Positions 28,342-64,000 of a stretch of 64,000 nt of DNA are shown here, in pieces (position 1 is the stretch's first letter; the number at the start of each line of letters is the position of its first letter). The notes beneath the pieces are model-generated. The model was not told the origin of the DNA and ran no database searches. It saw only the letters and a list, made by a program, of their open reading frames with translations. A program made the position numbers and the translations under genes. The stretch is taken from IMG/VR virus record IMGVR_UViG_3300027573_000779, positions 62,001-126,000 of that record. One strand, 5' to 3'.

Positions 28342-28343
28342 TT

Positions 28344-40706: not shown

Positions 40707-40709
40707 TAA

Positions 40710-41231: not shown

Positions 41232-41232
41232 A

Positions 41233-43443: not shown

Positions 43444-43446
43444 TAT

Positions 43447-46937: not shown

Positions 46938-47279
46938 ATGGCAGACATTTATGATATTAGTGTAATTCAGGGCGAAAACATCTATTTGAGGGTTGTAGCT
47001 CTAGATGTTAACCAAAACCCTATTGATTTAACTAACTACACAGTGTCGGGCTATGCCAAGTACCGTTATACTGATACAGGAATAGTTTTAAACTTAAGAC
47101 CCGCAATTCACAGTAGTTATATAAGTGGCTACATTGATATTAACGTGCCGGAAACCGGGACCGCCCCTCTTCCTGTAATGCAAGGGGTTTATGATATTGA
47201 AATTCACAACCCTTTTACCAGTTATACCACAAAAGTTATAAAAGGTCTTTTTAATGTAGAACCGGAGGCGACAAGATGA
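46938..47279 (+). CDS. Small Ig-like virion protein (BppU N-terminal-like)
   Basis: IQGE...PIDLTNYTV...GVYDIEI...KGLFNVEPEATR. Confidence 0.6.
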   Translation: MADIYDISVIQGENIYLRVVALDVNQNPIDLTNYTVSGYAKYRYTDTGIVLNLRPAIHSSYISGYIDINVPETGTAPLPVMQGVYDIEIHNPFTSYTTKVIKGLFNVEPEATR

Positions 47280-47773: not shown

Positions 47774-47774
47774 A

Positions 47775-48209
47775 ATGGCAGATTTGGTTTCAACGGCAGA
47801 CAGAACAGCGTTTATTAGTGGTTTAATTAATCACTTTGATACGTTTAAAGCTCCAATTATAGTTCATAAAGAACCTTTGACTCAGGTGGTGAACGAGAAT
47901 CAAAATCCTTTTATGGGATATGGGCCAATTGAGACTGATGTAACTTATGTTCCAGTTAGCGGCACTTTTTACGCAATAAAAGTTACTCATGATAGTATAA
48001 ACAATAATAATCTACCAATTATTAACACTCAACTGCCAACCAACACTATAAGAGTTAAGGTCTCTGGAGACGCAAAAAACTACATTTCTCAAGGCAAAAC
48101 AACAGCAATTACTTTCTTGGGCGAAATGTATAATCAAATCAGCGTCCCAATGCCCAAAAACTTTCTTGGATTTATTTTTTATTATTACGATTTAACTAAA
48201 GTTGAATAA
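47775..48209 (+). CDS. Putative head closure/stopper protein
   Basis: Size and position in neck block. Confidence 0.4.
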   Translation: MADLVSTADRTAFISGLINHFDTFKAPIIVHKEPLTQVVNENQNPFMGYGPIETDVTYVPVSGTFYAIKVTHDSINNNNLPIINTQLPTNTIRVKVSGDAKNYISQGKTTAITFLGEMYNQISVPMPKNFLGFIFYYYDLTKVE

Positions 48210-48211
48210 AC

Positions 48212-48835
48212 ATGGCAAAATATACAACAATCAACATTAATGTCTTAAATAAAGCAATTCAAAAAACTGCTAAATCTAGGACTAATTTTATGTTTAACGC
48301 TGCTAGAACAAAATTTGTGGCCGCTAAACAGAATATGTTGCGTGAGTTTGATGAGCATCCCGTTACTCAAGAATTGAAAGCTGGTCCTGAAGCAGAAGGA
48401 AACCCAAGTGGCACTTTAGGTGGACGCGCCAATCTTTATGCTTTTATTGGTTTTCCTGCCGAAACAGAACCAACAGAGATTATAAGAAGTGCCTTAGAAA
48501 GCTTTGTTAATATCTTAAATAACCCTACAATAACCTTTGGTTACAGGTCCGCGACATTTAGTTTTTCTGTCGTATATCCTTCTTTAACAGAGATTTATAA
48601 AGCGACCCCTTCACCTTTTAGTAGCAAAAGTTGGGTTAAAGGGATTGAAGATGGCATGTGGGGATTAACTCATTATTTAAATGGACTATATACAAACCCT
48701 CCAAAAGACTTTAGTGATTGGTCTAGGTCGGGACCTGCTATTGAATCTAAGTCCCAAGTAAGAGCAGATTCGTTTGAAGCTCGCCCTTATATGAAAGAAA
48801 TTCTTGAACATTTTGTAGCAAGAGTCAGCACATGA
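48212..48835 (+). CDS. Putative neck/tail completion protein
   Basis: Position; C-terminal ARPYM motif typical of HK97 gp10-like proteins. Confidence 0.45.
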   Translation: MAKYTTININVLNKAIQKTAKSRTNFMFNAARTKFVAAKQNMLREFDEHPVTQELKAGPEAEGNPSGTLGGRANLYAFIGFPAETEPTEIIRSALESFVNILNNPTITFGYRSATFSFSVVYPSLTEIYKATPSPFSSKSWVKGIEDGMWGLTHYLNGLYTNPPKDFSDWSRSGPAIESKSQVRADSFEARPYMKEILEHFVARVST

Positions 48836-49686
48836 GACCTCAATATGCCAATAGATTAATTTCAAGTTTTAACCTCTGGTTTAATAATACTCTTTTGAGG
48901 GAGGGGCAGGCTTATCAAACCACAACCTCTATCTTTTACCCAATTGGACAGGTTTACTATGGACTTTATACCTATGCAACTCCTTACAATCAATTCGTTT
49001 CAGATTATTCAGTAACGGGCGCGACGATTATCACTGGGGTTTATTTAAACGGAACCTTTGTTTCAACTGGCGTAAGTGGTTTAAAGGCAATAGATTACGA
49101 AAACGGCAGGGTTCATTTTACTGGCCAATTACCCTCAACCATTAGAGTTAGCGGCACTTTTTCCTTTAAAGAATTTAATGTTCAAATAACCGAAGAACAA
49201 GAAGAAAAGCTCCTTTTTGAAACAAAGTATAGCCCGCGTCCAAAACTAGGACAAGCTCCAACAGGTTTATGGGCAAGCACTTGGACCTATCCTATTATCT
49301 TTTTAAAGAACGTTGCAAGCGACAATAAACCGTTTGCTTTTGGAGGACAAGATGACTCAATTTATCAAATTTCCGCAATGATACTAGCTGACAGCCAATT
49401 TAACTTAGATGCTTTAAGCTCATTATTTGTGGATAAAACAAGAACAATATTAGGAATGTTAAATGAAAACGAATATCCGTACAATGTCTATGGTAGTTTT
49501 AAAACAGGACTATATAACTATACTGGCCTTGTTGCTAATAAAGATTATTCTTTTATAAATGATATCCATATATCTAAGTTCCAACCCAGTATTTATAGTC
49601 AGATGAAATTAGTGAATCCCGGCATTCATTTTGGTGTAATTGATTTTGAGATTAGTAAGGTAAGATATCCTAGACTAGGAACTTAA
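48832..49686 (+). CDS. Putative tail terminator protein
   Basis: Immediately before the tail tube gene; YPIIFL...PFAFGG. Confidence 0.45.
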   Translation: MRPQYANRLISSFNLWFNNTLLREGQAYQTTTSIFYPIGQVYYGLYTYATPYNQFVSDYSVTGATIITGVYLNGTFVSTGVSGLKAIDYENGRVHFTGQLPSTIRVSGTFSFKEFNVQITEEQEEKLLFETKYSPRPKLGQAPTGLWASTWTYPIIFLKNVASDNKPFAFGGQDDSIYQISAMILADSQFNLDALSSLFVDKTRTILGMLNENEYPYNVYGSFKTGLYNYTGLVANKDYSFINDIHISKFQPSIYSQMKLVNPGIHFGVIDFEISKVRYPRLGT

Positions 49687-49746
49687 AATTACTGTTCTCA
49701 TATTAATAAAACAGTTGTAATTAAACTTAGAAAACAGGACTAATTT

Positions 49747-50853
49747 ATGGCAAGAAACAGAGTTATTTATCAATCAGAGGGTGTATTTGCTGGTCAAAGA
49801 ACCCCTTGCACCGGTGTTAATCATACTGGCGCGGCTGATGTAAAAGAAATTTATCGTGTCCAAAGCGCGAATTATTCATTCAACCTTGGAAAACGAGACG
49901 TTAATCAATTTGGTGAACTCGCCGCAATCGATAGGATTCTAGTTGACCCTCCTACCGTTTCGCTCGATTTTACCTATTTGCTGGCCAATGTCTATAATGA
50001 ACAGGCATTGGGAATGACAGTTGGGATAAGCACTAATCCTACATCTAATGCTTTTTCAGGCATTTTTGCGGGTGCCACCGACGAAAAAGCTTACTGGGTT
50101 AAGACGGTTGCCTATGGTACTGACCTTCACGGTCTACCGTCTACTGGTTATGTTTTCGGCGCAATTGGTTTTGGTAACGGGTATATTAGCTCGTACAGTA
50201 TTGACGCTGCCGTAGGAGATTTCCCAAGAGCGAGCGTTCGTGTTGACTGCTCAAACATGAAGTTTGACAACTGGCTCAGCACCGACGAAGCAAAACAAAG
50301 CCCTTGTGTTAATAAAGAAAATGGAACACTCATTGCCGCAGATACTTATAGACTTCCTTCTGGAACGTCTACAACTTCTGCCCTTGACCAAACCACCGTT
50401 CTTCGTCCCGGTGACGTAGTTATGACTTGGGATAATGCCGCTGCGGCCACTATGGGCACGGCTATTAACGATGCCAAAATTCAAAGTTTCACTTTGTCTA
50501 GTGATATTTCTAAGACTCCGTTGAATAAGCTTGGAAGCAAGTTTGCATATTCGCAAGAAACCAACTTCCCAGTTACTGCCAGCCTTCGAATTACTGCTGC
50601 TGTGGGTGATATGAACACCGGTTCTCTTACCCAACTTCTGGAATCTACTGGAGTTAATACTGTGGGTGTCAAAATTTTTGCTCCTACGGGTTCTACCGTT
50701 AACTTCGGCTTTGACCTTAAGGGTGCTCAGCTTGATAGCCAAGAATATAGCTCCAGTATCGGTGATAGCAAAACTGTAACTATGAACTTCAGTGTTCCTA
50801 TTGCAGGCGCTAACGACCTTACTCGTGGTATTTTCCTAAGCGGAAGAGTCTAA
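49747..50853 (+). CDS. Major tail tube protein
   Basis: RVQSANYSF...DVNQFGEL; precedes chaperones and tape measure; followed by a strong terminator. Confidence 0.75.
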   Translation: MARNRVIYQSEGVFAGQRTPCTGVNHTGAADVKEIYRVQSANYSFNLGKRDVNQFGELAAIDRILVDPPTVSLDFTYLLANVYNEQALGMTVGISTNPTSNAFSGIFAGATDEKAYWVKTVAYGTDLHGLPSTGYVFGAIGFGNGYISSYSIDAAVGDFPRASVRVDCSNMKFDNWLSTDEAKQSPCVNKENGTLIAADTYRLPSGTSTTSALDQTTVLRPGDVVMTWDNAAAATMGTAINDAKIQSFTLSSDISKTPLNKLGSKFAYSQETNFPVTASLRITAAVGDMNTGSLTQLLESTGVNTVGVKIFAPTGSTVNFGFDLKGAQLDSQEYSSSIGDSKTVTMNFSVPIAGANDLTRGIFLSGRV

Positions 50854-50874
50854 TCCTGTTGTAAAATAAACTAG

Positions 50875-50907
50875 ATAAGCCCGAAGAAATTCGGGCTTAT
50901 TTTTTTT
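50875..50907 (+). terminator. Intrinsic terminator
   Basis: ATAAGCCCGAA-GAAA-TTCGGGCTTAT then T run. Confidence 0.92.
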
Positions 50908-50966
50908 GTTCTTTTTTTGGGAAACCTTGTGTAAAGATTAGTAGGTAAAAGGTCAGTTCCAAGGTT

Positions 50967-51281
50967 ATGGACATAAATAGTGAAAATCTGAAAGATTATA
51001 TTCTCTTTCATGTAACTAGAAAGATAACAAATCTTTATAAACATATACTTTTTATTCTGGAAGATTTGCGCGATGAAAAGTATTCAATGCAAGACCCAAA
51101 GAGTTATTCGCAAACCAGAAAACGGGTTTTGGATTTAGGAAATGACGCCATAAGAGAAATTAACGAACATTTTAAACATTTAGAGGTACAAATTAATGAA
51201 AACAAAACCCAATATCCAATCGGTGATTCGGGAACGTTTGTGTTTGCAAAGTCTTCAAAAAACAATGGAAGAAAAGTTTAG
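50967..51281 (+). CDS. Hypothetical protein
   Basis: Preceded by TGTGTAA at 50928 and AGGTAAAAGG. Confidence 0.6.
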   Translation: MDINSENLKDYILFHVTRKITNLYKHILFILEDLRDEKYSMQDPKSYSQTRKRVLDLGNDAIREINEHFKHLEVQINENKTQYPIGDSGTFVFAKSSKNNGRKV

Positions 51282-51429
51282 GGTGACGCCCAAGCTCGAA
51301 TATATTAAATCTACAGCTTTTTTAATTAAATTTAAAAACTGGGATGATAGCACTAAAAAAGACTTTATTAAAAATTTAGGCGGAAAGGTAAATTTTAAAC
51401 AAACACAGGAGTTTTTAAATACATTATGA
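51265..51429 (+). CDS. Small hypothetical protein
   Basis: Fills the gap; ATGA overlap with next gene; start uncertain. Confidence 0.4.
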   Translation: MEEKFRVTPKLEYIKSTAFLIKFKNWDDSTKKDFIKNLGGKVNFKQTQEFLNTL

Positions 51430-52151
51430 AAAAATTGCACGAGTTCACGGTATATAAGGAAACCGAAATAGAAGTTACGGTAAAGGATGAAAACGATAAG
51501 GACGTAGTAAAAAAGGAAAAGAAACGCGAGCCTTTTAAGTATTTTATCGCTAAACCTACCCGAAATCAAATTGATGAAGCAGACTTTTTCTATGCTCAAA
51601 AGTTTAATGAGGCGGCTAAAGCAGGACTTTTAACTAGAGCCTTGCTCGCTAAACGTTATTCAAACGATGGCGGCTCAATGAGTGAACCGGATAAAGAACA
51701 GTATGTATCGCTTTATACCGCCCTTTTTACCAAGGAAAATGAATATAAATCTTTAGCCGGTTTGCCGGAAGATAAGCAGGACAAGGAGAAAATAAAGAAA
51801 GTTACAGAAGAAATTATTGAGCTTCAAAAAGAAATTCAAGATTTTGAAGCTACCCAAATGAGTCTTTACGACCAAACTGCCGAAAGTTGGGCTAGGAATA
51901 AAACTATTCTTTGGTGGGTTCTTTTCCTGTCATATAAGTATACTGACGGCGAAAATTTTGAACCTGTTTTTAAAGGCCAGATTTTTGAGGAAAAAGACGC
52001 TGTTTATGGGGAAATTTGGGATTCAGAGGATAGTTTTCAGTTGGAAGTTGTTAATAAATTTGTCTTCTTTGTTAGTTTTTGGTATACAGGTCGCGCCAAT
52101 AAGCCAGAAGATTTTGCCGAAATAGCTAAAAGATTTGAACCAGAGTCCTAA
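51426..52151 (+). CDS. Putative tail assembly chaperone (gpG-like)
   Basis: Charged helical protein between tube and tape measure genes. Confidence 0.55.
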   Translation: MKKLHEFTVYKETEIEVTVKDENDKDVVKKEKKREPFKYFIAKPTRNQIDEADFFYAQKFNEAAKAGLLTRALLAKRYSNDGGSMSEPDKEQYVSLYTALFTKENEYKSLAGLPEDKQDKEKIKKVTEEIIELQKEIQDFEATQMSLYDQTAESWARNKTILWWVLFLSYKYTDGENFEPVFKGQIFEEKDAVYGEIWDSEDSFQLEVVNKFVFFVSFWYTGRANKPEDFAEIAKRFEPES

Positions 52152-52172
52152 AAATAAACTAACGTCCTGTTC

Positions 52173-52201
52173 GGCCCTTACCTAAAGTAGGGGCTTTTTT
52201 T
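52173..52201 (+). terminator. Intrinsic terminator
   Basis: GGCCCTTAC-CTAAA-GTAGGGGCT then T run. Confidence 0.8.
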
Positions 52202-52204
52202 GTA

Positions 52205-53221
52205 GTGAATAAACTAGATGAAATTAAACATAAAATTGCTCTTGCTGATATTTTAGTAGGTTATTCCACAGTAATATTTAATAATCAAACCATCTATATC
52301 AAACATTTTACCTTTCAAGAACACCTAAAAGTTGAACAAGAATATGAAACAAGCTTTGAAATAGCTGTTAAAAAGGGCGTTCCAACCATTGAAGACAAAA
52401 TAAAAGAACTTATTAAAGAAAAAGAGTGGACCGACGAAGAAGAAAAACAGTTCCAAAAACTTCCTCAAGATATAGGTATTTTAAAAGATACCAAGAAAAA
52501 ATTCTTCTTGGAAAAAGACGTGGAAAGAATTGATAAAAATATTAAGGCTGAAGAGGAGAAATTGCAAAAATTGGAGACTAAAAGAAACAGCCTATTAGGT
52601 TACACCGCAGAAACTTACGCAACAAAAAAAACTAACGAACTGTTTGTTTTTCATACCTTTAGAAATCAATTAGAACTAGATAAAACTTTATATTCTTGGG
52701 AAGAGTTTAATGAGTTGGATGAAAGTCAAATGGGCGATTTAATTAATCTTTTTAATAAAGATTGCGTTAGATTTGCCCCTCAAGAGATGAAAAAAACAGC
52801 TATTTTAAACTCTCACATGCAAATGATTTATTTGGCGGGAGAAGATTTGTGGAACTTTTATGGTAAGCCGGTAGTTCAATTTACCGCCCGTCAAAGCGAG
52901 CTTTATAGCCTAGGACGTTATTTTAAAGGACTTATTTCGGACTTAAAAGATAAGGTCACTAGCGATGTTTTAGACGACCCGGATAAACTAATTCAATATG
53001 TAGACTCTCAAAAAGCCGCTGAAACCCTTGGAACCGCCAAAATTCCTGAAGGAAAAGAATCAATTGGAGGAGGAACGGCTATTGTGGGAGCTTCCACTGA
53101 AGATTTAAAGAAATTAGGCTTAGATAAAGAAAAGGGCGCTGATAGTTTGGCTGAAGAAGCTGGAAAGAAAGGCGGCTCTTTAAATATGGAAGATTTATTA
53201 AAATTACACGGTTTGGTGTAA
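52205..53221 (+). CDS. Putative tail assembly chaperone (gpT-like)
   Basis: Directly before tape measure; FYGKPVVQFT..Q..L and DDPDKL motifs. Confidence 0.55.
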   Translation: MNKLDEIKHKIALADILVGYSTVIFNNQTIYIKHFTFQEHLKVEQEYETSFEIAVKKGVPTIEDKIKELIKEKEWTDEEEKQFQKLPQDIGILKDTKKKFFLEKDVERIDKNIKAEEEKLQKLETKRNSLLGYTAETYATKKTNELFVFHTFRNQLELDKTLYSWEEFNELDESQMGDLINLFNKDCVRFAPQEMKKTAILNSHMQMIYLAGEDLWNFYGKPVVQFTARQSELYSLGRYFKGLISDLKDKVTSDVLDDPDKLIQYVDSQKAAETLGTAKIPEGKESIGGGTAIVGASTEDLKKLGLDKEKGADSLAEEAGKKGGSLNMEDLLKLHGLV

Positions 53222-53242: not shown

Positions 53243-56200
53243 ATGGCCAATGATGGAGTAAGAGTACCTGTAGTACTAGAGTGGAATCAAGCGATTCAAG
53301 ACTCTATAGCACAGGCACGAAGAATCCCGCCAGTTAACGTTAGAGTTAATACTGGCCGGATTGGAGATGGTTTTAAACACGCGTCTAAAGAGGCCGAACA
53401 GTTTGAACGAGCCTTAGCTAGCGCCCAAACCCGCGTTTTAACCCTCGGGGCGTCTTTCGGCGCTCTGTTCGCAATTCAAAGAGGCTTTAAAGCCTTAATC
53501 CAAACAACCATTGATGTTGAAAAGCAGCTTAAAGACATTAATGTTATTTTGGGAGTAAGCACAAGCAGTCTTAGCACCTTTTCTGAGCAACTGTTTGGTA
53601 TAGCTAAAAATACCGGCCAAAGCTTTGAAACAGTAGCTAAAGCCGCCTTGGAATTTAGCCGCCAAGGTCTTGGAGTTCAAGAAACTTTAAAAAGAACCAA
53701 TGACGCCCTTATTTTAACCCGCCAAACTGGATTAGATGCCGCTGAAGCAACCGACGCTATCACTGCCGCTATTAACAGCTTTAGTCAAGCTGCTCTGACT
53801 TCAAGCGATATTGTTAATAAGTTTGCTAAGGTTGACCAAAACTTTGCAGTTAGTTCCGCTGACTTAGCAGAAGCTATTAAACGGGTGGGTTCTAGCGCTG
53901 AAGAAGCGGGAGTAGGAATTGATGAACTTATTGCTTTAGTTACCTCTGCCCAACAAATAACTCAACGTGGCGGTGCTGTAATTGGTAACGCTTTTAAGAC
54001 TATTTTTACTCGTACAGCCAGACCCCAAGTGCTTAATGACCTTGAACAACTTGGAATTACTGTCAGAAACGCTCAAGGAGATATTCTCCCGGCTGTTCAA
54101 ATCCTCACAAATTTGGCGAACAGTTATGATAATTTAAGTCAGGCCCAACAATCTGCCGCCGCTGAACTTGTAGGGTCTGTTTATCAAATTAACATTTTAA
54201 AAGCTTCTTTAAAAGATTTGGGTAAAGAACACTCGTTTTACTCTAAGGCTCTCAATGACTCTTCAACCGCAACTGACGAAGCTGTTCAACGTAACGAAGC
54301 TTTAAATACAACTCTAGCGGCTTTAATTAATAGAACTAAAGAAAACGTAAGGCAGTTTTCGGCTAATGTGGGACAGGACACTTTTGGCCCTTCAATTCGA
54401 AGAGTTGCTGGTCTTGCTAATGGTTTCTTGGAAAATGCTAATAACATTTTAGGTGCCGATAAAGCTGAAGTGGCTTTTAAAGAAATTGGTTCAGTTCTTG
54501 GAAAAGGACTGGTTAGGGGTTTTGGACAGTTCTTACAAGGTCCGGGTTTGGCGCTGATTGGTGTTGCACTGTTTAAATTTGCCAGTCAGTTCGCAAGGCT
54601 GGCAACAGAAGCTTATAAACTTTTGACTGACCTTAACAAAAGCACTGACCAAAGGGCCGCTATTGAGTCTCGCGTTTTAGGCGTTTTAAGACAAGAGCCT
54701 AATATTTATAGCCAAATACTAGGAAATAGTTTAAGTGTTGTTCAGGCACAAGAAAAGGTTCTTCAAATTATAACGGCACAAAATGCAGCCTTAAACGCCC
54801 AAAAAGCAATAGCTTCACAACTAACATCCACCCTCATTAATACTGGCGCAGTAGGAGTCAATCCTAAGACTAGGGAAGTGGTGACCAATCCAGCTTTAAA
54901 AAAAACACGCTCAGAAGGTAGCATTCCGAACTTTGCGGTAAATATTTTGGACGCTCAAAAGGAAATTGAAGGCGCTTATAAAGCTAAATACATTCCCGGC
55001 CAAGTGCGCCAAGTGGGAGACGCAGTAATTAATAATGCAGAAAGTATTAAAACTAGCGCCGCACACCCCCAAGAAAAAGCTATAGTGCCGCCTCAAGGCA
55101 GCGAAGCGGGACAAAAATACAAAGAAGCTTATCGAACTATTTATGGTAAAAGCCCTTATGGGGATGCAATTACCAAGGGGAGAAACGCTTTTCAGGTTCA
55201 GTGGATGAAGTCAATCGGCGCTAAAAGAGGGTTGGATTTAACTAATCCAGATAATATTTTAGTGCTTGCAAAACAGTTCAGAGAAACCTATGGGTCACAA
55301 CAGGGGCTGTTGCCATTTAATAAAGGAAAGGTGCCAAGTTTTGCCTCTAGTTTAACTTTATCAACTTCAAAAAACTTTGTTAAACTCGCAAAAGAAAGGG
55401 GTGTCAAAATTGTCAGAGAAGACCAGAGGGTTCCCCAAGGTAGTGCTTTTTATATTCGTTCTGGCGCAGAAGGAAAGAAAATAGTTCTTCCAAAAAAGAC
55501 TCCTATTGATGTTCTTGCTCATGAAGTAGGACACGACCTTTCATATGATTACTTAAATATATACTCTCCAAGACTTTTAAAAGAACAATCAGCTAACATC
55601 GAAGCCTTAAAAAGAATTCCCACAGAAAAAGAAAGACAGGGATATCGTGAAACACTAAGTCCTGCAACTAAAACATATAAAATTGGAATATTAAGAGGTA
55701 TTTTGAAGGATTTTGCTCCTAATATAGACGACGAAAGTATTTTTATTAATGAACTCAGAAAGCAGGAAGGCAAACATTCTGATAGATATTCCCCCGTAAT
55801 AAGAGCGCACAGTACCGCTTTGCGTGCTTTGATAAAAGATATAGGACCAAAAAAAGTAAAAGAGATATTGTCACAATTGCCCGAAATAGACAAAACCGAT
55901 TTAAAAAGAAAACCTTACGCTTCGGGGCACGTTCCAAACTTCAACCTCTTCAGTAAGGTTTCTACTGAAGACGAAGCTAACCGAATGGTTAAAGTCTCTT
56001 CGGTTAACGCGCTGAAGCCTTATTTGAAGAAATCAGAAGGTGATGTGCCAAATTTTGCCTCAGGGCGCGTCCCGAACTTTGCTTCTAGTTTATCTCTTTC
56101 AACTAGTAAAAAACTATTAAGGGAAGCTAAAAAAACAGGAATAAAAACACTAAGAACCAACGAACCAATACCTTATTATGATATTCCTTCGAGTTCGGTT

Positions 56201-59200
56201 CGCGCTCCAAAAGGAACTTCTTTTGATGTTATTGCGCACGAACTTGGTCACGGATTTTCTTATCAGGAAAACCCCCTTCTGGAAAGAGTGCGTTCAGATA
56301 TAAAATCAGAAGTGGGCGCTAATACTGAAATTTTAAACAGATTATCAGGAAAAGAAAAGAAATCATTTGCTAAACAAATGCTTAATCCTTTTAAAACCTA
56401 CAAGATAACATCTTTAGTTGATTCTTTAAGAGGACTGGTTCCCCTACCTGAGATGGTCAAAATCATTGGACAACACAGAATAAGAACCAAAGATTTAGGA
56501 AAAAGAGCCGGGGATTTAGGTAATTATAGTGATTTTAGAAAATCTCAATCACAAGTTCTAAGAGACATTGTTAAGACAGTGGGACCACAAAAAGTTAAAG
56601 AGCGCATTTCGAATCTTTCACCGGTTAATAAACAAGACTTAAAGGCGCGTTATTTTGCTTCAGGGCGAGTGCCCAACCTTGCCAAAAGTTCCTACTCTTT
56701 GGTTCATAGTACAACTCCACAGTTGGCTAAGACAATAGAGTCAGAGGGCCTTAAACCTAGAAGAAAAGAGGGCTTTGAAAAGGGGTATTTTTCGCAACAT
56801 GTTACTAACTTTGAGAAACTTGCTGAAGAAGTCAGAGCAAGCGAGTTTCCTGATTTGCCTAGTAGACTAAACTCGGTTTATTTAACTCCAGAAAGTCGAA
56901 AATTTAATAGGTTTGGAACGCATTTTAAAGTTGCCCCAAATAAAGAAAGCTATATTTTCAACTTAAAAAAGATAGATAAAGCTTTTGATTTAGCGGGTCC
57001 TTATGGGACGAGCACTGTTCCAAATACTAAATTACGCGAACTTGCTCGTGAATATTTCCAATCCGGCATTCCTTTAAATAGACAAAATCTAAATAAAGTT
57101 TTAGAAAAAGAGAAAGAAAATACGGGTTATGACTATGGAGACAATCCTTTTTTTGAAATCCTGACGCCGGGACCAGTTTCAGCTAAAAAAATAAAAAGGC
57201 TTAACTCAAAAGGCGCGGTTCCAAACTTTAATATTGATGTTAATGGTATTTTTTCACAACTTCCTGAGCGTGAACGCGTTGTAATAGAAGAACACGCCGA
57301 TGGATTAAAATTGGGCGAAATTGCAAAGAAATATAATATTTCAAGAAATAAAGCAAGCTCTATTTTCAATCGCGGACGTAATAGTTTTATAAAGCAATAC
57401 GGTTTGGCTAAAAAGGGTTTTGGAGAGTTCGCGGCACAAGGTAAAATCCCAAACTTTGCTAAAATCTACAAACTTCGCACTGGATTTCCTGAACATATTT
57501 TAAAACAAATTCAATCATTACATGGTAAACAATTACGAATATTTCCGACTAAGGACCACTTTCCTAAAGAGTTGCGAAACGATATTATAAAGTATGGAGA
57601 AAACAATATTCCCAAGTTTGACCCAAACTTAATAATCGACAGTAATGAAATTATTGAAGTTGAACACGATGATAATATTCGAGGACTTCATGGAACCAAT
57701 ATTGAGAAAATTGTAGTAAAGAAAACAACGCCTTATTTAGACCAACATCTGGCAATTGCCAAAGATGGCGGTATTAAGAGTATTTGGCACACTTTAAATC
57801 CAGACAGGTTTAATAAACCACAAAATCCTAGAAATAGAATTTATAGTCAGGGCCAAGTGCCGAATTTTGCTTCTTCATTTTCTAATATCAGTTTAGCAAA
57901 AGCTCCACATAATTCTACTGCGATAAGAAGACTGGGAATACCAAAAACCGGCAGTTATGCTTCCTATTACTTTGACAGGAATAAACACATAAACATAAGT
58001 TTCATTGAATCTAACCAAAAAGGGGACGCTTTTAGGTTATTTAAAGCTTTGGGGCGCACCGCCCGTAGAATTAAGCGTCCAATTATAAGTGAAACTCTAG
58101 TCAAATCGTCCAAACAACCTGACGAAAACCAAACTAATTGGGAACAACTTTTAGTAAGATATCCTCAATTACGCTACCGGGACTTACCAAACGCTTCAAC
58201 CAATGGGGTTTTTCGGCCAAATCTTCTAGGAAGTGAAGAACGAAGCTTTAACACCTTTGAAGAACTAAAAACTATAGTAAACCAAGTTCCTTCAGATATT
58301 TTCAAAAAAAACCTTAGAACAGGATTCACAAGTGTCGGCAACCTCTCCACTACTTTTAAAAACAAAGGGCAAGCGCCAAATTTTGCTTACATTCCATTCA
58401 TTTCTCCTCTTGTCGGGCGCGTGGTGACTAATTTGGTGCATTCTGGCGAAGGTTTTAGTATGGCGGCTTTAAAACCTGCTTTTAATTTTGCTAAGGAAAA
58501 GGGCATAAAACAAACGATTAAAAATATTATTTTAGACAAACCGGCGCACCAAGGAACTTTTTTTGGTTTTAACGAAGAAGGAAGAGAAGACTTCGGCTTG
58601 TCCGAATTTGGTTTTCGAAAAATGTTTGGTTTGGAACCTAGAATTCCACCAAATCCAGAAGTTAAACTCCGTCAAATTCCGGGCAAGAAAAACACCTATG
58701 CAATAGGTGGAAGAAATCCACTACAAAATTTTGGAGTTAATCTAACAACAAAAACTCCTCAAAATGTTAGATATCGCCCTCAAGACCCAAATACAATTAG
58801 AAGTTTGTTTAGGAGTCCAGATTTCGGAGCTTTTAACCTAGATGCCAACACCAAAAACAGAAAAATTCGCTATTCTGACACTTGGGATTTTGCACTCCAT
58901 GGGAGCGAAAAGTTGAATTTTAAGGAATTAAAAGACGAACTAAAAAGACGTTTTATTAGACAGCCCGAACTTGAATCTATCAAAGATGAATTTAAATTAA
59001 ACGTTCTTCCAAAAGTTTTAAAACAAAACCCTTTAAAAACAATTAAGGATATTAAAGAACTTTTTCCCAAAAACAGACTTAAGAGTGTTTTGAATCCTGC
59101 GAATCTTGTTTTCCAAGGTAATGCGGGAGCCAGTCTTTTTACTAATGAGCCGGTTCATTCTTATGGTAGTTCACAGTTAACAAAACTGTTTAGGAAGCTA

Positions 59201-62200
59201 GTAAACAGTGTCTCGTCACCAGCAACATTCGTAGGCCAAGTTACAAATCCCGATGACAAAAAACTTCTTTTTGATAGTCTTACTGACCTTGCAAATAGCG
59301 ATATAGACCTTCAAAAAACCAAAGCTACGCCTGCCGCCAAATTTTTAGGTACAAAATATAAACAAAACAAATTAAAAGAATCATTTATAACACTTCAGGA
59401 TAGATTGTATAATAGATTCAATTTTAATCCTTCTTCAAAACGTGATTTTAGTAATCGCAAGGACGCTTTTCCAATTGGCAAGCCGGGAATCAACATTTTT
59501 TCGGCTATAGAAAAATATGGTAGAGCCAAAGGTGAAGTGCCAAATTTTGCTTCCTCTTTGCCTTTATCAACCGCCAAAGAATTATTAGCTCTAGCCAAAG
59601 AAAGAAAGATTCGCATTACTAGAGATAAAGAACTTGGAGCTTTTCATAGATTTTCAGAAAGAAGAATTAATCTTCCTAAAGGCGAATCAATTGAAACTTT
59701 CGCGCATGAATTGGGTCACAGTTTATCTACCGATAATTTTTATAAATTTGCTAATGCAAATCGGATAGAAAGAGAAGTAATGGCTAATCAAGAGATTGTC
59801 CAACGACTGGTTGACCCAAAAGAACAAGAAACATTTAAAACAAACACTCTTGAATCTTTTAAATCTTATAAAAGCGGAATAATACTAGAACGGGTTTGGC
59901 CACAATTGCAAATTCCAGAAGAAAAACGCAATCAATATATTGAAATTCAACAAAAAGAATTTAAAAAAACTCAGAGAAGTAAAGGTATAAGTCCAGAGCA
60001 TCGAAGTAGCGCTGCTGTATTACGAAAACTTGTTAAAGATTTTGGGCCAAAAACCATAAAACAACTTATTAGTTCCACTCCCCGCGACGAGAGGGAAGCT
60101 TTAAAACTGCGCTATTCTTTTGGAAAAATCCCTAGTTTTGCCGTAATGAGTCCGCAGGAAAAAGCCTTTAAAGATATCGCTTTAAGACTAAATTCAGAAA
60201 AACATATAGGATATGGCCCACAAAAATATTTTTTACCATTTTTGTCTGATAAAACCGTAAATCCCTATCAATCATTATATTATAGCACCCCATACGAACA
60301 ACAACAAACAAAAAAAGAAGAAGTTGAAAAGAAACTAATAAATTTTATTCCCGAAGGTAAAAATTTCCTAAGACCATATAACAATATTCTACAGCAAGCC
60401 CCCGCTGTTAAAGATGCTTACAGGTTTGTAAGAAACCTTTTTGGTGATTTTGCTGGTCGTGGTTCTGGCGACCCTCTTGAGCGTTCTGCAAACAACTATT
60501 TGAAGATAATGCGTGGTTTACAAAAAACCGGTGTTTTTAAAGAAATAAACAAACTGTCGCCGCAACAATTATTAAGAGGAGGGATAAAATCAGGTAATCT
60601 TTCTCTATACGGTTTTGGGGGAGACCCCCTTCCTGAATCAAAATTCAAAACAAGAGCTTTGGAGTCTGGCAATCGCGACCTTGTGGCTAACGACCCATTA
60701 TATTCGTTTCATCAAAGGTTTGAAAGTAAAAAAGAAGAATTAAAACTAAGAAAACAGTTTAAAGCTTTTACAAGCTCCTTTGTAAACTCTGTTTCTAAAT
60801 TCAGGAACATTCCAAGAATAAAAAATAAACTTGAAGAAATAACTGGCGGTGACCATACAAGACTAGCCCTAACTGCAAAAAAATATATTCCGCCTGAAAT
60901 TTATGAACGTTTAGCTTACCTAAGCAAAACCTTTGTAAATACAAAACGGCAGGCTTATAATCTTGGTGTAGACATTGATTCTCCATTTTACTTTCGTGGA
61001 CAAAGTAGAAGCGAAGCGGCAATTTTAGACAAACTTAAAGAATTTACCTCTTTGGGATTTGCAAGTCAGACAGATAGATTAGGCGTTACTTTAAATAATA
61101 ATCCATTGTTTGCTGCTGCTTTTGGCGTTACTTCCGGCAAAGAGTTTGGAAAACCGGGGTTATTGGGAATTTATAGAAAAAAACAAATCGACAGTAGAGA
61201 ACCAAGAAGGCTAGGAGAAAACATCTCTTCTGGCAGGCTTAGAATAGATGACCTGTTTGGTTTTATTGATTTGGCGGCTCAAAAATTTGTTCCAGCGTCT
61301 TCTCTAAGTAAAGTATATGGTCCAGAACACGCGCCCTCTTCTGAAATTCTGGAGAAAACCAAATCTTTGCTAAGTAAAGAAGATTACGACATAATAAAAT
61401 CTCAAAGTTTACATAAAGATTATAATCCAAACACACAATTAACTCTTACAAGAGGATTAGATGTTCGTAGAGGAAAGAAAATATCAGACTACCGTGGTCC
61501 AAGTCAAACTAACCCCAATCTTGGCGAACTTTCTTTTAAAGAGTTGCTTGACTATCTAAAACACTCAATAGATACTACCCAACCGGGAGTTATTCCAACA
61601 GGTGGGCCAGAAAGTTCTTTTGCAAATGTCAGTTCTGACGCTATTTTAGTTAAAAACCGAAAAACCGCTAAAGAATTAGAAAATAAACCCGTTCAAAAAG
61701 AGGGACAGGCGCATTTCCAAAGGCTGGTCAGTCAATCAGAATTATTCGGATACGACAGACTACAAAACCTTTTTGATAACCCAAATCTTTCAACAGAAAG
61801 AAAAAACAAACTGTTGAGAAGCGGAATCGTTGTTAATCTTCCTGAAATTAGAGGGCAAATTGGATATAGAACGGCAGCACCCGAACGCGAATACCCAATT
61901 TTAACATCAACCCCAAAAACTTCTGGACCTGTAAATATTGGCAGATTATTTGCTGTTTCGCCTTATATATTCAAAAAATCAGGTTATTCAAAAGGAAAGT
62001 TGCCAAACTTTGCAAAAGCTCCGCAATTTTCTCAACTTCAATTAAAAGAAATTTTGGGCGGCTCAACTGAAGCTAGAAAAGCTGTTTTCCAAGACAGTCA
62101 ATTTGTTTTAAAATACGGAAAATCTTCTGGTCACGCTATAAATGAATTTGTTTCAAATAGATTATTTAATGCTTTTGGCGAAAACGTGCCCGAAGCTCAA

Positions 62201-64000
62201 TTAATTGACACTCCTCAAGGTAAAGCCTTTCTGTCTAAATTCATCCAAAGTCAATCTTTTGGAGAACTGTATGATAAAGGAGATATTAATACAAGACAAA
62301 GATTAATTCAAGGAGTTAAACCTTCTTTTGCGGCTCATGCGGCCTTTGCTAATTGGGACGCATTTGGCGATTGGAATCCAGCAGGAGCCAATGTAAGACT
62401 AGATTCAAATAATAGACAGTTTTTTGTGGACTTGGGTGGGGCTTTAGCTTATAGAGGTTTGGGCGCACCTAAACCCAATTTTGGTCCAGAAGTGCCCGAA
62501 CTGCGTTCTCTTATTGATTATGCATCTAATCCTTATGCTAAAGCCGCTTTTAAATTTCAACCAGAAGAGCTAAAATCTAATGTTGCCGATTTTCTAAAAA
62601 GAACTCCGTCAAATTTAAGCGGTTTGTTAGAGTCTTTAAATAGTGAAACCCAAGGGGACCCACATATCACTAAAGCACTAAAACAAATTCCTAATCGTTT
62701 AAATTATCTTAGAAACTTTATTAAATCCAAAGGTTCTATCCCAAATTTCGCGTTCTTTTCAGGAATAGCTTCTGTCGCGCAATCACTTACAGGAGCTAAA
62801 AAACTTCCAAAACAAAACATTCGTGCTAACATTACTCCCGAAGAAATGGAGGCAATCTATTTTAATTACGCTAAAACCATTTATAATCCTCAAAAAGGAA
62901 AAATCCCAGTAGGTTTAAATTATTTTGCGAACAAGGCTTTCAATTCCGCGATGTTTGAACATCAAGGCTCTTATGTTTTTGGTTCTCACGATAACGAGTT
63001 GTTCCTTCCAACTCACTTTGCTCCAAAAAGCTTAAAGGGCGGATTTGCGGCGCAAAAAGCATTAAGTGAATATTCTAATGTAATGTATGCCGTAACTCAG
63101 GAAATGACCCCAATGCTAGAAAGACTTGGGTTCAGTGTGGCTAAATCTGGAGTTAAAGTTCCCTTCAGGGGCGGAACTGCATTAAAAGACTTTTTGGTTT
63201 CTGATAAACTGCGAACCCCAATGTTTCTTACCAATTTCCTTTCTCAAATGAAACAGGGAGCGGGTTCTAAATACGTTAAACAATATTTAACAAGAGAAGA
63301 CCAAGCTAAATTTAGTCATTATTATCCTTATGGTGGGGGAACTCCGGGCGAAGATGAAGCTATTGAATACTTAAGAAACAGAGGAATTACAGCTAATCAG
63401 GGCAAAATTCCTTCGTCTAATGCGTATTTAAAAGCTAAGTTAACGCACGTCCCCAATTTTGCTCTTCTTGACTCTCTTAGGAGTTTAATTGATGTTCAAA
63501 ACAATAAGTTTTTGGGTTCGAAATTACCCAATACACTTGGAGAAATTTACCCTGTTATAAGGGACCAATTTCCTAAAATAGGACCAATCTTAAAGGGAAT
63601 TAACCCTAGATTACTACTAGATGATATTAATGTTGATAGTGGGACATTATATCGAGGTTTTGCTAGAGCTGTGCGCTCAAAAACATATGACGGTCCTTTT
63701 AGAGCATATGACAGTCCTATTAAACCCTCCGAAACCGTCACAGGTGAACTTGACTTTTTATATAACTTTACGCACGCTTTAAATAGAGGCCAACCGTTAA
63801 AATTCCAAAAAGCCTCGCTAGAAGCCCTGTTCCAAATTGGCGCTCAAGCAAAACAAGAAGGGATAACTGATAAAGTAGGTATCAATACAAATAGCGACCC
63901 ATTTTTTAGAAACCTCGGAAACCCGCAACAACATAGAGATTTTGCACGAAACTTTTTAAATTTAGATAAATCAAAACCCAATCAATCCTTTATTCAAAAA
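53243..64000 (+). CDS. Giant tape measure protein fused to an array of enzyme-like modules (3' truncated; absent from ORF track)
   Basis: Hand translation from ATG 53243 shows no stop in 3586 codons. First ~560 aa are TP901-type tape measure (AALEFSRQG, NFAVSSADLAEAIKRVGS, GAVIGNAFKTIFTR); the rest is modules separated by GxVPNFA linkers. Confidence 0.93.
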   Translation, partial: MANDGVRVPVVLEWNQAIQDSIAQARRIPPVNVRVNTGRIGDGFKHASKEAEQFERALASAQTRVLTLGASFGALFAIQRGFKALIQTTIDVEKQLKDINVILGVSTSSLSTFSEQLFGIAKNTGQSFETVAKAALEFSRQGLGVQETLKRTNDALILTRQTGLDAAEATDAITAAINSFSQAALTSSDIVNKFAKVDQNFAVSSADLAEAIKRVGSSAEEAGVGIDELIALVTSAQQITQRGGAVIGNAFKTIFTRTARPQVLNDLEQLGITVRNAQGDILPAVQILTNLANSYDNLSQAQQSAAAELVGSVYQINILKASLKDLGKEHSFYSKALNDSSTATDEAVQRNEALNTTLAALINRTKENVRQFSANVGQDTFGPSIRRVAGLANGFLENANNILGADKAEVAFKEIGSVLGKGLVRGFGQFLQGPGLALIGVALFKFASQFARLATEAYKLLTDLNKSTDQRAAIESRVLGVLRQEPNIYSQILGNSLSVVQAQEKVLQIITAQNAALNAQKAIASQLTSTLINTGAVGVNPKTREVVTNPALKKTRSEGSIPNFAVNILDAQKEIEGAYKAKYIPGQVRQVGDAVINNAESIKTSAAHPQEKAIVPPQGSEAGQKYKEAYRTIYGKSPYGDAITKGRNAFQVQWMKSIGAKRGLDLTNPDNILVLAKQFRETYGSQQGLLPFNKGKVPSFASSLTLSTSKNFVKLAKERGVKIVREDQRVPQGSAFYIRSGAEGKKIVLPKKTPIDVLAHEVGHDLSYDYLNIYSPRLLKEQSANIEALKRIPTEKERQGYRETLSPATKTYKIGILRGILKDFAPNIDDESIFINELRKQEGKHSDRYSPVIRAHSTALRALIKDIGPKKVKEILSQLPEIDKTDLKRKPYASGHVPNFNLFSKVSTEDEANRMVKVSSVNALKPYLKKSEGDVPNFASGRVPNFASSLSLSTSKKLLREAKKTGIKTLRTNEPIPYYDIPSSSVRAPKGTSFDVIAHELGHGFSYQENPLLERVRSDIKSEVGANTEILNRLSGKEKKSFAKQMLNPFKTYKITSLVDSLRGLVPLPEMVKIIGQHRIRTKDLGKRAGDLGNYSDFRKSQSQVLRDIVKTVGPQKVKERISNLSPVNKQDLKARYFASGRVPNLAKSSYSLVHSTTPQLAKTIESEGLKPRRKEGFEKGYFSQHVTNFEKLAEEVRASEFPDLPSRLNSVYLTPESRKFNRFGTHFKVAPNKESYIFNLKKIDKAFDLAGPYGTSTVPNTKLRELAREYFQSGIPLNRQNLNKVLEKEKENTGYDYGDNPFFEILTPGPVSAKKIKRLNSKGAVPNFNIDVNGIFSQLPERERVVIEEHADGLKLGEIAKKYNISRNKASSIFNRGRNSFIKQYGLAKKGFGEFAAQGKIPNFAKIYKLRTGFPEHILKQIQSLHGKQLRIFPTKDHFPKELRNDIIKYGENNIPKFDPNLIIDSNEIIEVEHDDNIRGLHGTNIEKIVVKKTTPYLDQHLAIAKDGGIKSIWHTLNPDRFNKPQNPRNRIYSQGQVPNFASSFSNISLAKAPHNSTAIRRLGIPKTGSYASYYFDRNKHINISFIESNQKGDAFRLFKALGRTARRIKRPIISETLVKSSKQPDENQTNWEQLLVRYPQLRYRDLPNASTNGVFRPNLLGSEERSFNTFEELKTIVNQVPSDIFKKNLRTGFTSVGNLSTTFKNKGQAPNFAYIPFISPLVGRVVTNLVHSGEGFSMAALKPAFNFAKEKGIKQTIKNIILDKPAHQGTFFGFNEEGREDFGLSEFGFRKMFGLEPRIPPNPEVKLRQIPGKKNTYAIGGRNPLQNFGVNLTTKTPQNVRYRPQDPNTIRSLFRSPDFGAFNLDANTKNRKIRYSDTWDFALHGSEKLNFKELKDELKRRFIRQPELESIKDEFKLNVLPKVLKQNPLKTIKDIKELFPKNRLKSVLNPANLVFQGNAGASLFTNEPVHSYGSSQLTKLFRKLVNSVSSPATFVGQVTNPDDKKLLFDSLTDLANSDIDLQKTKATPAAKFLGTKYKQNKLKESFITLQDRLYNRFNFNPSSKRDFSNRKDAFPIGKPGINIFSAIEKYGRAKGEVPNFASSLPLSTAKELLALAKERKIRITRDKELGAFHRFSERRINLPKGESIETFAHELGHSLSTDNFYKFANANRIEREVMANQEIVQRLVDPKEQETFKTNTLESFKSYKSGIILERVWPQLQIPEEKRNQYIEIQQKEFKKTQRSKGISPEHRSSAAVLRKLVKDFGPKTIKQLISSTPRDEREALKLRYSFGKIPSFAVMSPQEKAFKDIALRLNSEKHIGYGPQKYFLPFLSDKTVNPYQSLYYSTPYEQQQTKKEEVEKKLINFIPEGKNFLRPYNNILQQAPAVKDAYRFVRNLFGDFAGRGSGDPLERSANNYLKIMRGLQKTGVFKEINKLSPQQLLRGGIKSGNLSLYGFGGDPLPESKFKTRALESGNRDLVANDPLYSFHQRFESKKEELKLRKQFKAFTSSFVNSVSKFRNIPRIKNKLEEITGGDHTRLALTAKKYIPPEIYERLAYLSKTFVNTKRQAYNLGVDIDSPFYFRGQSRSEAAILDKLKEFTSLGFASQTDRLGVTLNNNPLFAAAFGVTSGKEFGKPGLLGIYRKKQIDSREPRRLGENISSGRLRIDDLFGFIDLAAQKFVPASSLSKVYGPEHAPSSEILEKTKSLLSKEDYDIIKSQSLHKDYNPNTQLTLTRGLDVRRGKKISDYRGPSQTNPNLGELSFKELLDYLKHSIDTTQPGVIPTGGPESSFANVSSDAILVKNRKTAKELENKPVQKEGQAHFQRLVSQSELFGYDRLQNLFDNPNLSTERKNKLLRSGIVVNLPEIRGQIGYRTAAPEREYPILTSTPKTSGPVNIGRLFAVSPYIFKKSGYSKGKLPNFAKAPQFSQLQLKEILGGSTEARKAVFQDSQFVLKYGKSSGHAINEFVSNRLFNAFGENVPEAQLIDTPQGKAFLSKFIQSQSFGELYDKGDINTRQRLIQGVKPSFAAHAAFANWDAFGDWNPAGANVRLDSNNRQFFVDLGGALAYRGLGAPKPNFGPEVPELRSLIDYASNPYAKAAFKFQPEELKSNVADFLKRTPSNLSGLLESLNSETQGDPHITKALKQIPNRLNYLRNFIKSKGSIPNFAFFSGIASVAQSLTGAKKLPKQNIRANITPEEMEAIYFNYAKTIYNPQKGKIPVGLNYFANKAFNSAMFEHQGSYVFGSHDNELFLPTHFAPKSLKGGFAAQKALSEYSNVMYAVTQEMTPMLERLGFSVAKSGVKVPFRGGTALKDFLVSDKLRTPMFLTNFLSQMKQGAGSKYVKQYLTREDQAKFSHYYPYGGGTPGEDEAIEYLRNRGITANQGKIPSSNAYLKAKLTHVPNFALLDSLRSLIDVQNNKFLGSKLPNTLGEIYPVIRDQFPKIGPILKGINPRLLLDDINVDSGTLYRGFARAVRSKTYDGPFRAYDSPIKPSETVTGELDFLYNFTHALNRGQPLKFQKASLEALFQIGAQAKQEGITDKVGINTNSDPFFRNLGNPQQHRDFARNFLNLDKSKPNQSFIQK
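54917..63463 (+). repeat. Dispersed in-frame linker repeat G-x-[VILA]-P-[NS]-[FL]-[AN]
   Basis: Copies start at 54917, 55325, 55925, 56039, 56063, 56663, 57212, 57440, 57851, 58367, 59531, 60122, 61994, 62732 and 63443 (THVPNFA), with a degenerate copy at 63401. Confidence 0.92.

Follow-up and report, generated by a model that had tools for sequence, protein, structure and literature searches.

A giant phage tape measure protein with a linker-delimited array of mostly unrelated modules

We analysed a 64,000-nucleotide stretch of viral DNA (the window; positions 62001-126000 of the 208,933-bp contig IMGVR_UViG_3300027573_000779), which ends inside a giant tape measure gene whose product carries, between two conserved ends, a string of mostly unrelated modules joined by one repeated linker. 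On the plus strand, in frame 2, the last stop codon lies at window position 53237, an ATG follows at 53243, and 3,587 codons then stay open to the end of the window. When extended beyond the window on the source contig (the extended locus is referred to as L001), the open reading frame (ORF) ends with a stop codon at L001 26405 and encodes a complete protein of 5,468 amino acids (aa). The preliminary description of this DNA had reported an open frame of at least 3586 codons without stops between modules, and had proposed to follow the contig to the stop codon. The frame proved to be uninterrupted and longer than first seen, the stop being reached at codon 5,468.

The tape measure gene and its linkers

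An artefactual origin of the gene, whether through misassembly or through separate genes joined by sequencing error, is in our view extremely improbable. The exact protein is known from a single assembly lineage (one member sequence, two contigs), as an artefact would be, but the gene is stop-free over ~16.4 kb in a genome of 36-37% G+C, and the same architecture recurs across many samples, on more than 100 independent contigs, with both the N- and the C-terminal scaffold conserved among relatives. ORFs in the other frames across the region measure 60-114 aa. The only repeats within the 16.4-kb gene are the 26-nt linker copies (69-88% DNA identity); long internal DNA repeats are absent, and thus nothing in its repeat structure suggests misassembly.

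The first 564 residues (53243..54934, plus strand) form the N-terminal tape measure scaffold. PF10145 (PhageMin_Tail) matches at aa 121-307 with an E-value of 1.8e-26 (93.7 bits, cut-off 33.2), and ten tape-measure PHROGs match a region that spans aa 35-500 overall, the best being phrog_4211 (4.3e-46), in agreement with the ~560 aa of TP901-type tape measure initially described. The N-terminus is 23-26% identical to annotated tape measure genes of Bacillus phages, Lactococcus phages also align (~25%), and the scaffold is common to 95 of 98 of the relatives introduced below. At the other end of the protein lies a linker-free C-terminal scaffold of 1,664 aa (aa 3805-5468; L001 21413-26404), shared with 87 of the 98 relatives, with a weak match to the tape-measure family phrog_934 and hydrophobic segments at aa 4056-4080 and 5244-5263. 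Compared with the region between the two ends (the cargo), the scaffold contains more A, E, L, K, Q, R, and M, and fewer aromatic residues.

The cargo is punctuated by a short linker of the general form G-x-[VIL]-P-[NS]-[FL]-A. The full protein contains 17 copies, all at aa 562-3802, and 15 of them lie inside the window. Composition predicts 0.05 occurrences of the tetrapeptide PNFA for the window part of the protein; ten are observed. A position matrix built from 14 G-x-[VILA]-P-N-F sites gave the 17 linkers scores of 13.9-36.8, while the 95th percentile of the best scores from 200 shuffles was 11.3. Three copies are degenerate (PSF at aa 698, PNL at 1144, and PSF at 2297). An additional PNF at aa 3078 is inside the kinase-like domain and was not counted as a linker. 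No match to the motif was found in the other ORFs of the contig (74 kb) or in ~0.5 million ORF residues flanking 110 related genes, and a literature search for the motif itself returned nothing relevant.

The codons of the motif differ synonymously between copies (GGT/GGG/GGC/GGA, CCA/CCG/CCC, AAC/AAT, TTT/TTC, and GCT/GCC/GCG/GCA), indicating selection on the peptide and not on the DNA. Based on this variation and on the 69-88% likeness of the copies, a DNA-level repeat or recombination signal was ruled out as the main cause of linker conservation; microhomology at the linkers may still aid module exchange.

Eight linkers fall within the two AlphaFold2 (AF2) models, A5 and A6. All eight are located in, or at the edge of, segments with predicted local distance difference test (pLDDT) values below 50 between confidently predicted domains, so predicted domain boundaries coincide with every modelled linker. 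The converse does not hold, for not every domain border carries a linker: the 624-aa segment 2300-2923 comprises at least two domains with no internal linker, and a single 1,057-residue inter-linker segment of a relative, P0002, contains three recognisable parts. The linker array reported earlier is therefore real, while the accompanying picture of about 14 modules, each bounded by linkers, has to give way to 17 linkers that leave some domain borders unmarked. The models suggest that the linker is a flexible, exposed segment between domains, in which the invariant P-N-F and Gly could be read by a protease or by a binding partner. A site of the signal-peptidase or prepilin-peptidase kind is speculation: with a small residue at −3 and Gly at −1 ahead of [FLY], the linkers fit the −3/−1 rule, but no hydrophobic helix adjoins them.

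Modules of the insertion zone

All linkers and modules within the window lie on the plus strand; linker scores below are position-matrix scores, and segments cited with linkers have pLDDT below 50. The zone opens with linker 1 (GSIPNFA, P at aa 562; 54917..54937; score 27.6; segment 9-27 of A6), followed by the core module M1 (aa 565-700; 54935..55342), which has homologues in 56 relatives. AF2 predicts for M1 a helix, four strands, and a helix (pLDDT block means ~50-91, highest in the C-terminal helices), and M1 gave no matches in Pfam or the PDB. The degenerate linker 2 (GKVPSFA; 55325..55345; score 22.6; segment 146-164 of A6) separates M1 from the zincin-like module A (aa 701-900; 55343..55942), which is closed by linker 3 (GHVPNFN; 55925..55945; score 33.3; segment 353-368). 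Between linkers 3, 4, and 5 lie two mini-segments of 38 and 8 aa (55943..56080), which are predicted to be disordered and contain no domain. Linkers 4 and 5 themselves are in tandem, 8 residues apart (GDVPNFA-S-GRVPNFA; 56039..56083; scores 31.8 and 31.1). The mini-segments and tandem linkers may be scars of cassette loss. The zincin-like module B (aa 947-1146; 56081..56680) comes next and ends at the degenerate linker 6 (GRVPNLA; 56663..56683; score 20.2).

Further along the chain, module M5 (aa 1147-1329; 56681..57229) has a match to DUF2441 below the cut-off (9e-4, 19.6 bits, cut-off 25), a match to phrog_5663 (3e-6), and no relatives within the family set. It is followed by linker 7 (GAVPNFN; 57212..57232; score 26.6), the small module M6 (aa 1330-1405; 57230..57457), and linker 8 (GKIPNFA; 57440..57460; score 31.3). 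Module M7 (aa 1406-1542; 57458..57868), with no family match and one relative, in tape measure protein P0006, ends at linker 9 (GQVPNFA; 57851..57871; score 36.8). Module M8 (aa 1543-1714; 57869..58384) shares 39% identity with an L057 module whose end coincides with a linker, and 27% with a module of L050; linker 10 (GQAPNFA; 58367..58387; score 31.2) joins it to module M9 (aa 1715-2102; 58385..59548), for which nothing was found in Pfam, PHROGs, PDB sequences, or relatives. Linker 11 (GEVPNFA; 59531..59551; score 34.2) precedes the zincin-like module C (aa 2103-2299; 59549..60139), and the degenerate linker 12 (GKIPSFA; 60122..60142) follows it with a score of 13.9, above the 95th shuffle percentile.

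The remaining part of the zone consists of the multidomain segment M11 (aa 2300-2923; 60140..62011), linker 13 (GKLPNFA; 61994..62014; score 32.3; at the edge of a low-confidence segment in A5), the kinase-like module M12 (aa 2924-3169; 62012..62749), linker 14 (GSIPNFA; 62732..62752; score 32.3; segment 593-601 of A5), module M13 with its GNAT-like predicted fold (aa 3170-3406; 62750..63460), linker 15 (THVPNFA; 63443..63463; score 26.2; segment 832-841 of A5), and module M14 (aa 3407-3726), which gave no matches and is cut by the window end (63461..64000; in full, L001 20219-21178). Beyond the window follow linker 16 (L001 21161-21181), the core module M15 (L001 21179-21412), which has relatives in 91 of 98 family proteins, and linker 17 (L001 21395-21415). 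Pfam and PDB sequence searches yielded nothing above the cut-offs for M5, M7, M8, M9, M14, and the N-terminal half of M11. Module-versus-module comparison bears out the earlier view that the modules are mostly unrelated.

The three zincin-like modules A, B, and C, each of ~200 residues and bounded exactly by linkers, are paralogues with 34-35% identity. The three HExxH motifs noted at first reading are indeed present, as HEVGH at aa 760 in A and as HELGH at aa 999 in B and aa 2155 in C. Alignment of the paralogues shows an invariant HExGH and a downstream E..AN.E, with invariant Glu at +17 and +23 relative to the second His. Module C matches phrog_87, annotated as 'metallo-protease', at aa 2117-2196 (1.3e-9). 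In the AF2 model of module A, pLDDT is mostly 70-95, and the HExxH motif lies in a helix (216-230) that follows a three-strand sheet (strands 182-211). Pfam matches, in module B to Reprolysin, M13, and M4, are weak and below the cut-offs, a zincin profile found nothing among PDB sequences, and no free-standing relatives of the module came up in a word-indexed search. Taken together, motif conservation and the predicted structure support the assignment of modules A-C as zincin-like metallopeptidases.

The kinase-like and GNAT-like assignments proposed earlier are also supported. An exhaustive HMMER search with residues 2530-3726 against 1.84 billion representatives returned 1,670 relatives, most of the listed ones being aligned to M12. 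In 23 members of the M12 family, K, E, D, N, and D are invariant and follow one another as in a kinase-like active site; M12 itself keeps all five (K2957, E2968, D3039, N3050, and D3063). Similarity to known kinases is weak (HipA_C 0.057, choline kinase 0.41), with no significant Pfam or PDB match; the conserved catalytic residues support a kinase-like identity. Ten M12 relatives were scanned against Pfam: Phage_Mu_F was found in four, and ADPrib_exo_Tox, NUDIX, and DUF3626 in single ones. These fusions place M12 in the repertoire of phage proteins thought to be injected, and the occurrence of M12 relatives in MuF- and ADP-ribosyltransferase-fused phage proteins fits the injected-cargo picture put forward earlier. 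M13 was modelled with high confidence (pLDDT 82-97), and most of the 50 listed Foldseek matches in the PDB are GNATs or related acyl-CoA transferases, with probabilities of up to 0.97 and E-values of only 0.014-0.2 for the 841-residue query. Pfam gave no match. In P0002 and P0004, modules beginning at a linker share 43-46% identity with M13. A GNAT-like fold of M13 is thus supported by modelling.

Two other proposed identities fared less well. The sigma region 4 helix-turn-helix (HTH) assigned to M6 is borderline: PF04545 (Sigma70_r4) matches with 3.7e-5 and 23.6 bits, just under the cut-off of 24.1, and PHROG sigma-factor families match with 4e-4, so that M6 is a probable HTH of sigma-70 region 4 type. 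The ADP-ribosyltransferase is unconfirmed, and the C-terminal part of M11 (aa 2577-2923) is best regarded as a candidate. This part has homologous segments in four other giant tape measure proteins (P0002, P0004, P0009, and P0012), each segment ending at a linker, and in the five sequences FRG, one Ser, and ExE are invariant. Our protein has LNNN where the relatives have TSS, the spacing of ~250 residues from S to ExE is atypical, a profile search of the PDB gave no matches, and there is no profile or fold support for the assignment.

Relatives, cassettes, and tail genes

A protein search for the linker among metagenomic tape measure proteins, suggested at the outset, revealed a family of other giant tape measure proteins with the same motif. 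At least 211 relatives in IMG/VR were found through an M15 alignment and 32 through an M1 alignment; many relatives, 40-90 kb in size, come from freshwater and marine samples. Tape measure ORFs at 110 loci measure 1.4-4.5 thousand residues, with 1-9 strict G-x-[VILAF]-P-N-F sites each (at least two in all but one); with a looser pattern, up to 12 linkers are found per relative protein. The family consensus, from 433 sites, is A-[SA]-x-G-[FLY]-[IV]-P-N-F-A. The simplest architecture consists of the N-terminal scaffold, a linker, M1, a linker, a module of ~270 residues, a linker, M15, a linker, and the C-terminal scaffold. M1 and M15 cluster together, and in 77 of 85 complete proteins the last module of the array is of the M15 type. 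At 3,240 residues and 17 linkers, the cargo of the 5,468-aa protein is the largest in the sample, the family median being 592 cargo residues.

The 410 inter-linker modules of the family grouped into 70 clusters, and GNAT, HATPase, and PcfJ matches were obtained among the relatives' modules. Most modules of the 5,468-aa protein are unique within the family set. Where modules are shared, the linker boundaries are kept and the position in the array is changed between relatives. Between the proteins of loci L056 and L060, identity is 91.5% over residues 1-1511, and what follows, from two residues past the linker at 1507, is unrelated, a clean mosaic junction, while L052 and L062 have the same module between different linker pairs, i.e., transposed. 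The modules thus behave as cassettes, and the linkers are the exchange points.

The commonest family module, cluster 1 (~270 aa; e.g., L007 10277-11110), occurs in 74 of 99 tape measure proteins and is absent from the 5,468-aa protein. It has conserved G..FE, PFDF, and DAK motifs, which by eye are PD-(D/E)xK nuclease-like, and no sequence match in Pfam or the PDB. An HExxH module was found in only 6 of 99 family members, and built-in zincins as a general linker protease were ruled out for the family on that basis.

Among 185,579 species genomes, a single match was found, on a 64-kb viral-looking contig of a Marinimicrobia-like metagenome-assembled genome. With this single match and none to M1 or M15 in cultured phages, the lineage appears to be lytic and uncultured, and not a prophage family. 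The motif is absent from the Bacillus phages Staley and LC76P1.

Immediately upstream of the tape measure gene lies a conserved tail gene block of eight genes (165, 144, 207, 284, 368, 104, 241, and 338 aa; 47276..53221, plus strand), whose counterparts are found in the same order in 39-94 of the 110 related loci. Searches of Pfam, PHROG, and the PDB gave no matches for these genes, and none could be identified as a tube or chaperone gene; by inference from their location, the 241- and 338-aa genes sit where tail assembly chaperone genes are usually found. A lambda-like tail-tip block (window 20110-30256) is ~23 kb upstream of the tape measure gene and not directly downstream of it. The block encodes a gpL-like minor tail protein (20643-21662; phrog_18, 5.6e-58) and a J-like central fibre (23070-27035, 1,321 aa; phrog_31, 1e-146), together with a pair of neighbouring 'tail assembly' paralogues (28344-29309 and 29309-30256). 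Replication-side genes lie upstream of the structural region at 993-2510, 7746-10361, and 10951-12921, and encode a DnaB-like helicase (phrog_19, 7e-59), a DNA polymerase (phrog_405, 1e-155), and a glycosyltransferase-like protein. The ends of the tape measure protein, the tail synteny, and the lambda-like tip cluster together point to a non-contractile, lambda-like tail, and the source would be a large, uncultured phage of the siphovirus-type jumbo kind.

Three large ORFs (903, 736, and 1,154 aa) at window 37995-46911, between head-like and tail genes, had no PHROG match and no counterpart in the 110 related loci. Past the tape measure stop codon, genes are on the opposite strand (284, 929, and 224 aa; L001 26386-30737, minus), and the 929-aa product contains beta-roll, ice-binding-like repeats (PF21300, 2e-6). 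The same inversion after the tape measure gene is seen in relatives L117 and L118, the latter with an Mtd_N receptor-binding domain at this place.

Delivery of the cargo and alternatives

The account that we favour, and consider moderately probable, is that the tape measure gene doubles as a carrier of a string of cargo domains, i.e., that it encodes a polyvalent effector array delivered through the tail. The scaffold is made up of the N-terminal PF10145 region and the C-terminal region of ~1,660 residues, with an insertion zone between them that ends in M15 and, in the 5,468-aa protein, begins with its paralogue M1; in this zone, unrelated globular modules are joined by one flexible, conserved linker. 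Tape measure proteins of siphoviruses are commonly processed and exit the tail at infection. As a tape measure fills the tail tube and exits first, the cargo, present in the virion, would travel along with it, probably unfolded on its passage into the host envelope or cytoplasm, and would act there on host targets in takeover or counter-defence. The linker would be a common handle for one factor, most likely a site-specific protease that frees the modules, or alternatively a docking site for the tail lumen or for chaperones. In its most elaborate form, which we put forward only tentatively, the tape measure would be a programmable injection magazine, in which any linker-flanked domain is threaded, ejected before the DNA, and cut free, perhaps in cis by the three zincins.

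The idea of a tape-measure cargo system had already been advanced in the preliminary description. Its architecture, its boundaries, and three enzyme-like fold or motif types stood up to analysis, while the HTH is borderline and the ADP-ribosyltransferase unconfirmed. Several further observations weigh against delivery of cargo by the tape measure. The system is known from sequence only, and no cultured relative was found: a search of cultured phages with M15 was empty, the only other similarity being that of the tape measure N-terminus to Firmicutes phages. Most modules of the 5,468-aa protein have no recognisable fold or family, and searches of PDB sequences with the whole cargo region were empty or insignificant. 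AF2 is confident in M12 for the N-lobe strands only, and in M11 and most of M12 confidence is low. Foldseek searches of PDB and BFVD with the M1-plus-zincin model were not significant (E of at least 0.016), with M34, IrrE, and other zincins listed. The Pfam polyvalent-protein families (MPTase-PolyVal, LPD, PBECR, etc., E up to 1) gave no match in the whole protein or in its single modules. Finally, no protease was recognised among the conserved neighbour genes in Pfam, PHROG, or the PDB, and a cleaving enzyme is not supplied by most relatives.

A separate difficulty concerns the tail tube, the lumen of which is ~4 nm. Three chains of folded 20-40 kDa domains would be hard to fit into it, and delivery through the tail therefore needs unfolded or extended cargo. 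The problem would not arise if the protein were a polyprotein for the purpose of expression only, with the cargo excised before or during tail assembly and acting late in the producing cell, or packaged elsewhere. Tube geometry is the main argument for excision; the absence of correlation between scaffold length and cargo length (r = −0.02) and the common processing of tape measure proteins are also in line with it. However, removal of such a central stretch would leave the ruler in two parts that have to work together, late expression would be odd for takeover-type domains, and the amino acid composition of the cargo is hard to explain in ordinary cytoplasmic enzymes. We therefore consider excision improbable.

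The composition in question is a near-absolute exclusion of Cys. The 5,468-aa protein contains no Cys at all, compared with 0.83% in neighbouring genes; Trp (0.18% versus 1.1%) and Met (0.59% versus 1.55%) are also depleted. Among the relatives, 95 of 98 proteins are Cys-free, and their cargo modules contain 5 Cys in 75,196 residues. Two ordinary tape measure proteins of Bacillus phages are likewise Cys-free, while neighbouring tail genes are not. Since cargo and ordinary tape measures both avoid Cys, the cargo is under the same constraint as the scaffold. This argues that the cargo, unlike an ordinary cytoplasmic protein, shares the fate of the ruler, and would be confined in the tail and led through a narrow channel or an oxidising compartment.

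A Cys-free protein would also suit the oxidising periplasm, and the modules might then serve entry itself, with the zincins and other domains digesting or remodelling the cell envelope. Wall-degrading domains are well established in tape measures, some wall endopeptidases have zincin folds, and the cargo would be first out of the tail. The tape measures of mycobacteriophage TM4 and of T5 (pb2) reportedly contain peptidoglycan hydrolase motifs, and the present protein resembles them in having an enzymatic element (an Rpf-like motif in TM4, a peptidase region in pb2) inside a tape measure that acts at entry. Those proteins differ in having one or two wall-hydrolase motifs and no array, linker, or cytoplasm-type domains. 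Pfam scans of the whole 5,468-aa protein gave no match to any wall-hydrolase family, be it lysozyme, transglycosylase, M23, or another. The HTH, kinase-like, and GNAT modules would need DNA, ATP, and acetyl-CoA, all cytoplasmic, the M12 relatives are of cytoplasmic type (MuF, ADP-ribosyltransferase, NUDIX), and fifteen modules go far beyond what passage through the wall would require. A role confined to entry is therefore unlikely, if slightly less so than excision.

If the cargo is delivered with the tape measure, the linker need not be cut. It could be a docking or hinge motif for one partner (the tube lumen, chaperones, or other tape measure chains), so that the tethered domains are kept ordered and soluble and work after ejection as one multi-enzyme polypeptide. 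The invariant P-N-F, preceded at a distance of three residues by a fixed Gly, would suit a peptide-binding pocket and a protease alike, the motif is confined to tape measure genes, most relatives have no built-in peptidase, and two conserved genes are at the usual chaperone position. Moreover, some polyvalent proteins are transferred uncleaved (N4 vRNAP, ArdC, and TraC1, cited in PMC5512222). Docking has difficulty with the tandem linkers 8 residues apart and the empty 38-residue segment, which have no obvious docking purpose, and with the lack of linkers in the long scaffold regions, where contacts with tube or chaperones should matter most. It is a possibility to be kept in mind, albeit a doubtful one. 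Within the favoured account of delivery through the tail, cleavage at the linker is plausible and only slightly favoured over docking, since release of effectors at inter-domain sites is recurrent elsewhere and three putative peptidases here directly follow linkers. As 93 of the 99 members have no HExxH module and no protease was recognised among the neighbours, an enzyme of the phage or of the host could act in trans, or the linker might stay uncut.

The preliminary description knew of no described system of this architecture. Our full-text literature search likewise found no tape measure chassis with an internal, linker-delimited effector array, and no universal linker, but the concept itself is known from polyvalent proteins, MuF toxins, and injection-system effectors. 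Polyvalent proteins, as defined by Iyer, Burroughs, Anand, de Souza, and Aravind (2017, PMC5512222), combine 2-15 unrelated conflict-type domains, such as zincin-like MPTase, kinase, GNAT, and ADP-ribosyltransferase domains, in one polypeptide, are encoded among late or virion genes, and are predicted to enter the cell along with the DNA, possibly with autoprocessing by their own peptidase. The likeness lies in three zincin-like modules and kinase-like, GNAT-like, and probable HTH modules in one ORF, and in the occurrence of the M12 family in such proteins. It is through these M12 relatives that the link runs, the Pfam polyvalent families being unmatched. Polyvalent carriers are packaged in the head or transferred by conjugation, whereas here the presumed carrier is the tail ruler, with a cassette zone and a universal linker; the words 'tape' and 'linker' do not occur in the text of PMC5512222.

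MuF polymorphic toxins (Jamet et al. 2017, PMC5576092) have a head-protein chassis and usually one C-terminal toxin. They resemble the present protein in using a virion structural domain as chassis, and Phage_Mu_F occurs in four of the ten M12 relatives scanned; they differ in that our protein has no MuF domain (no Phage_Mu_F, PF04233, was found in it with Pfam), a tape measure chassis, and an internal array of up to 15 modules. Tape-measure-related effectors of the Sle1 type, from actinobacterial contractile injection systems (PMC13277306, PMC11126660), have functional domains that vary by species and can be swapped experimentally (PMC13277306). Like the carrier proposed here, they have a platform of tape measure origin, which is loaded into a tail-like tube before its ejection. 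Unlike it, they belong to bacterial injection systems and have a single C-terminal functional domain, with no repeated linker reported. A more distant parallel is offered by toxins and polyproteins outside phages. MARTX-type toxins and viral polyproteins are arrays of unrelated effector domains in one chain that are released at inter-domain sites by an in-chain protease. The organisms, delivery routes, and cleavage chemistry are different, and most members of the present family have no built-in protease.

If the cargo does ride on the tape measure, there would be, besides the head, a second route for pre-made effectors, which would reach the host before the genome. The ~70 module clusters would then form a catalogue of candidate takeover or counter-defence activities. 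How at least 3,000 residues of globular domains could be accommodated beside a length-setting ruler in a narrow tube is a physical puzzle in its own right, and the linker might lend itself as a small, transferable tag with which foreign proteins are loaded into phage tails or tail-like particles. Recent reports describe several defence systems that sense tape measure proteins, or act on them, at the time of injection, and a tape measure with its own enzymes bears on this conflict between defence and injection.

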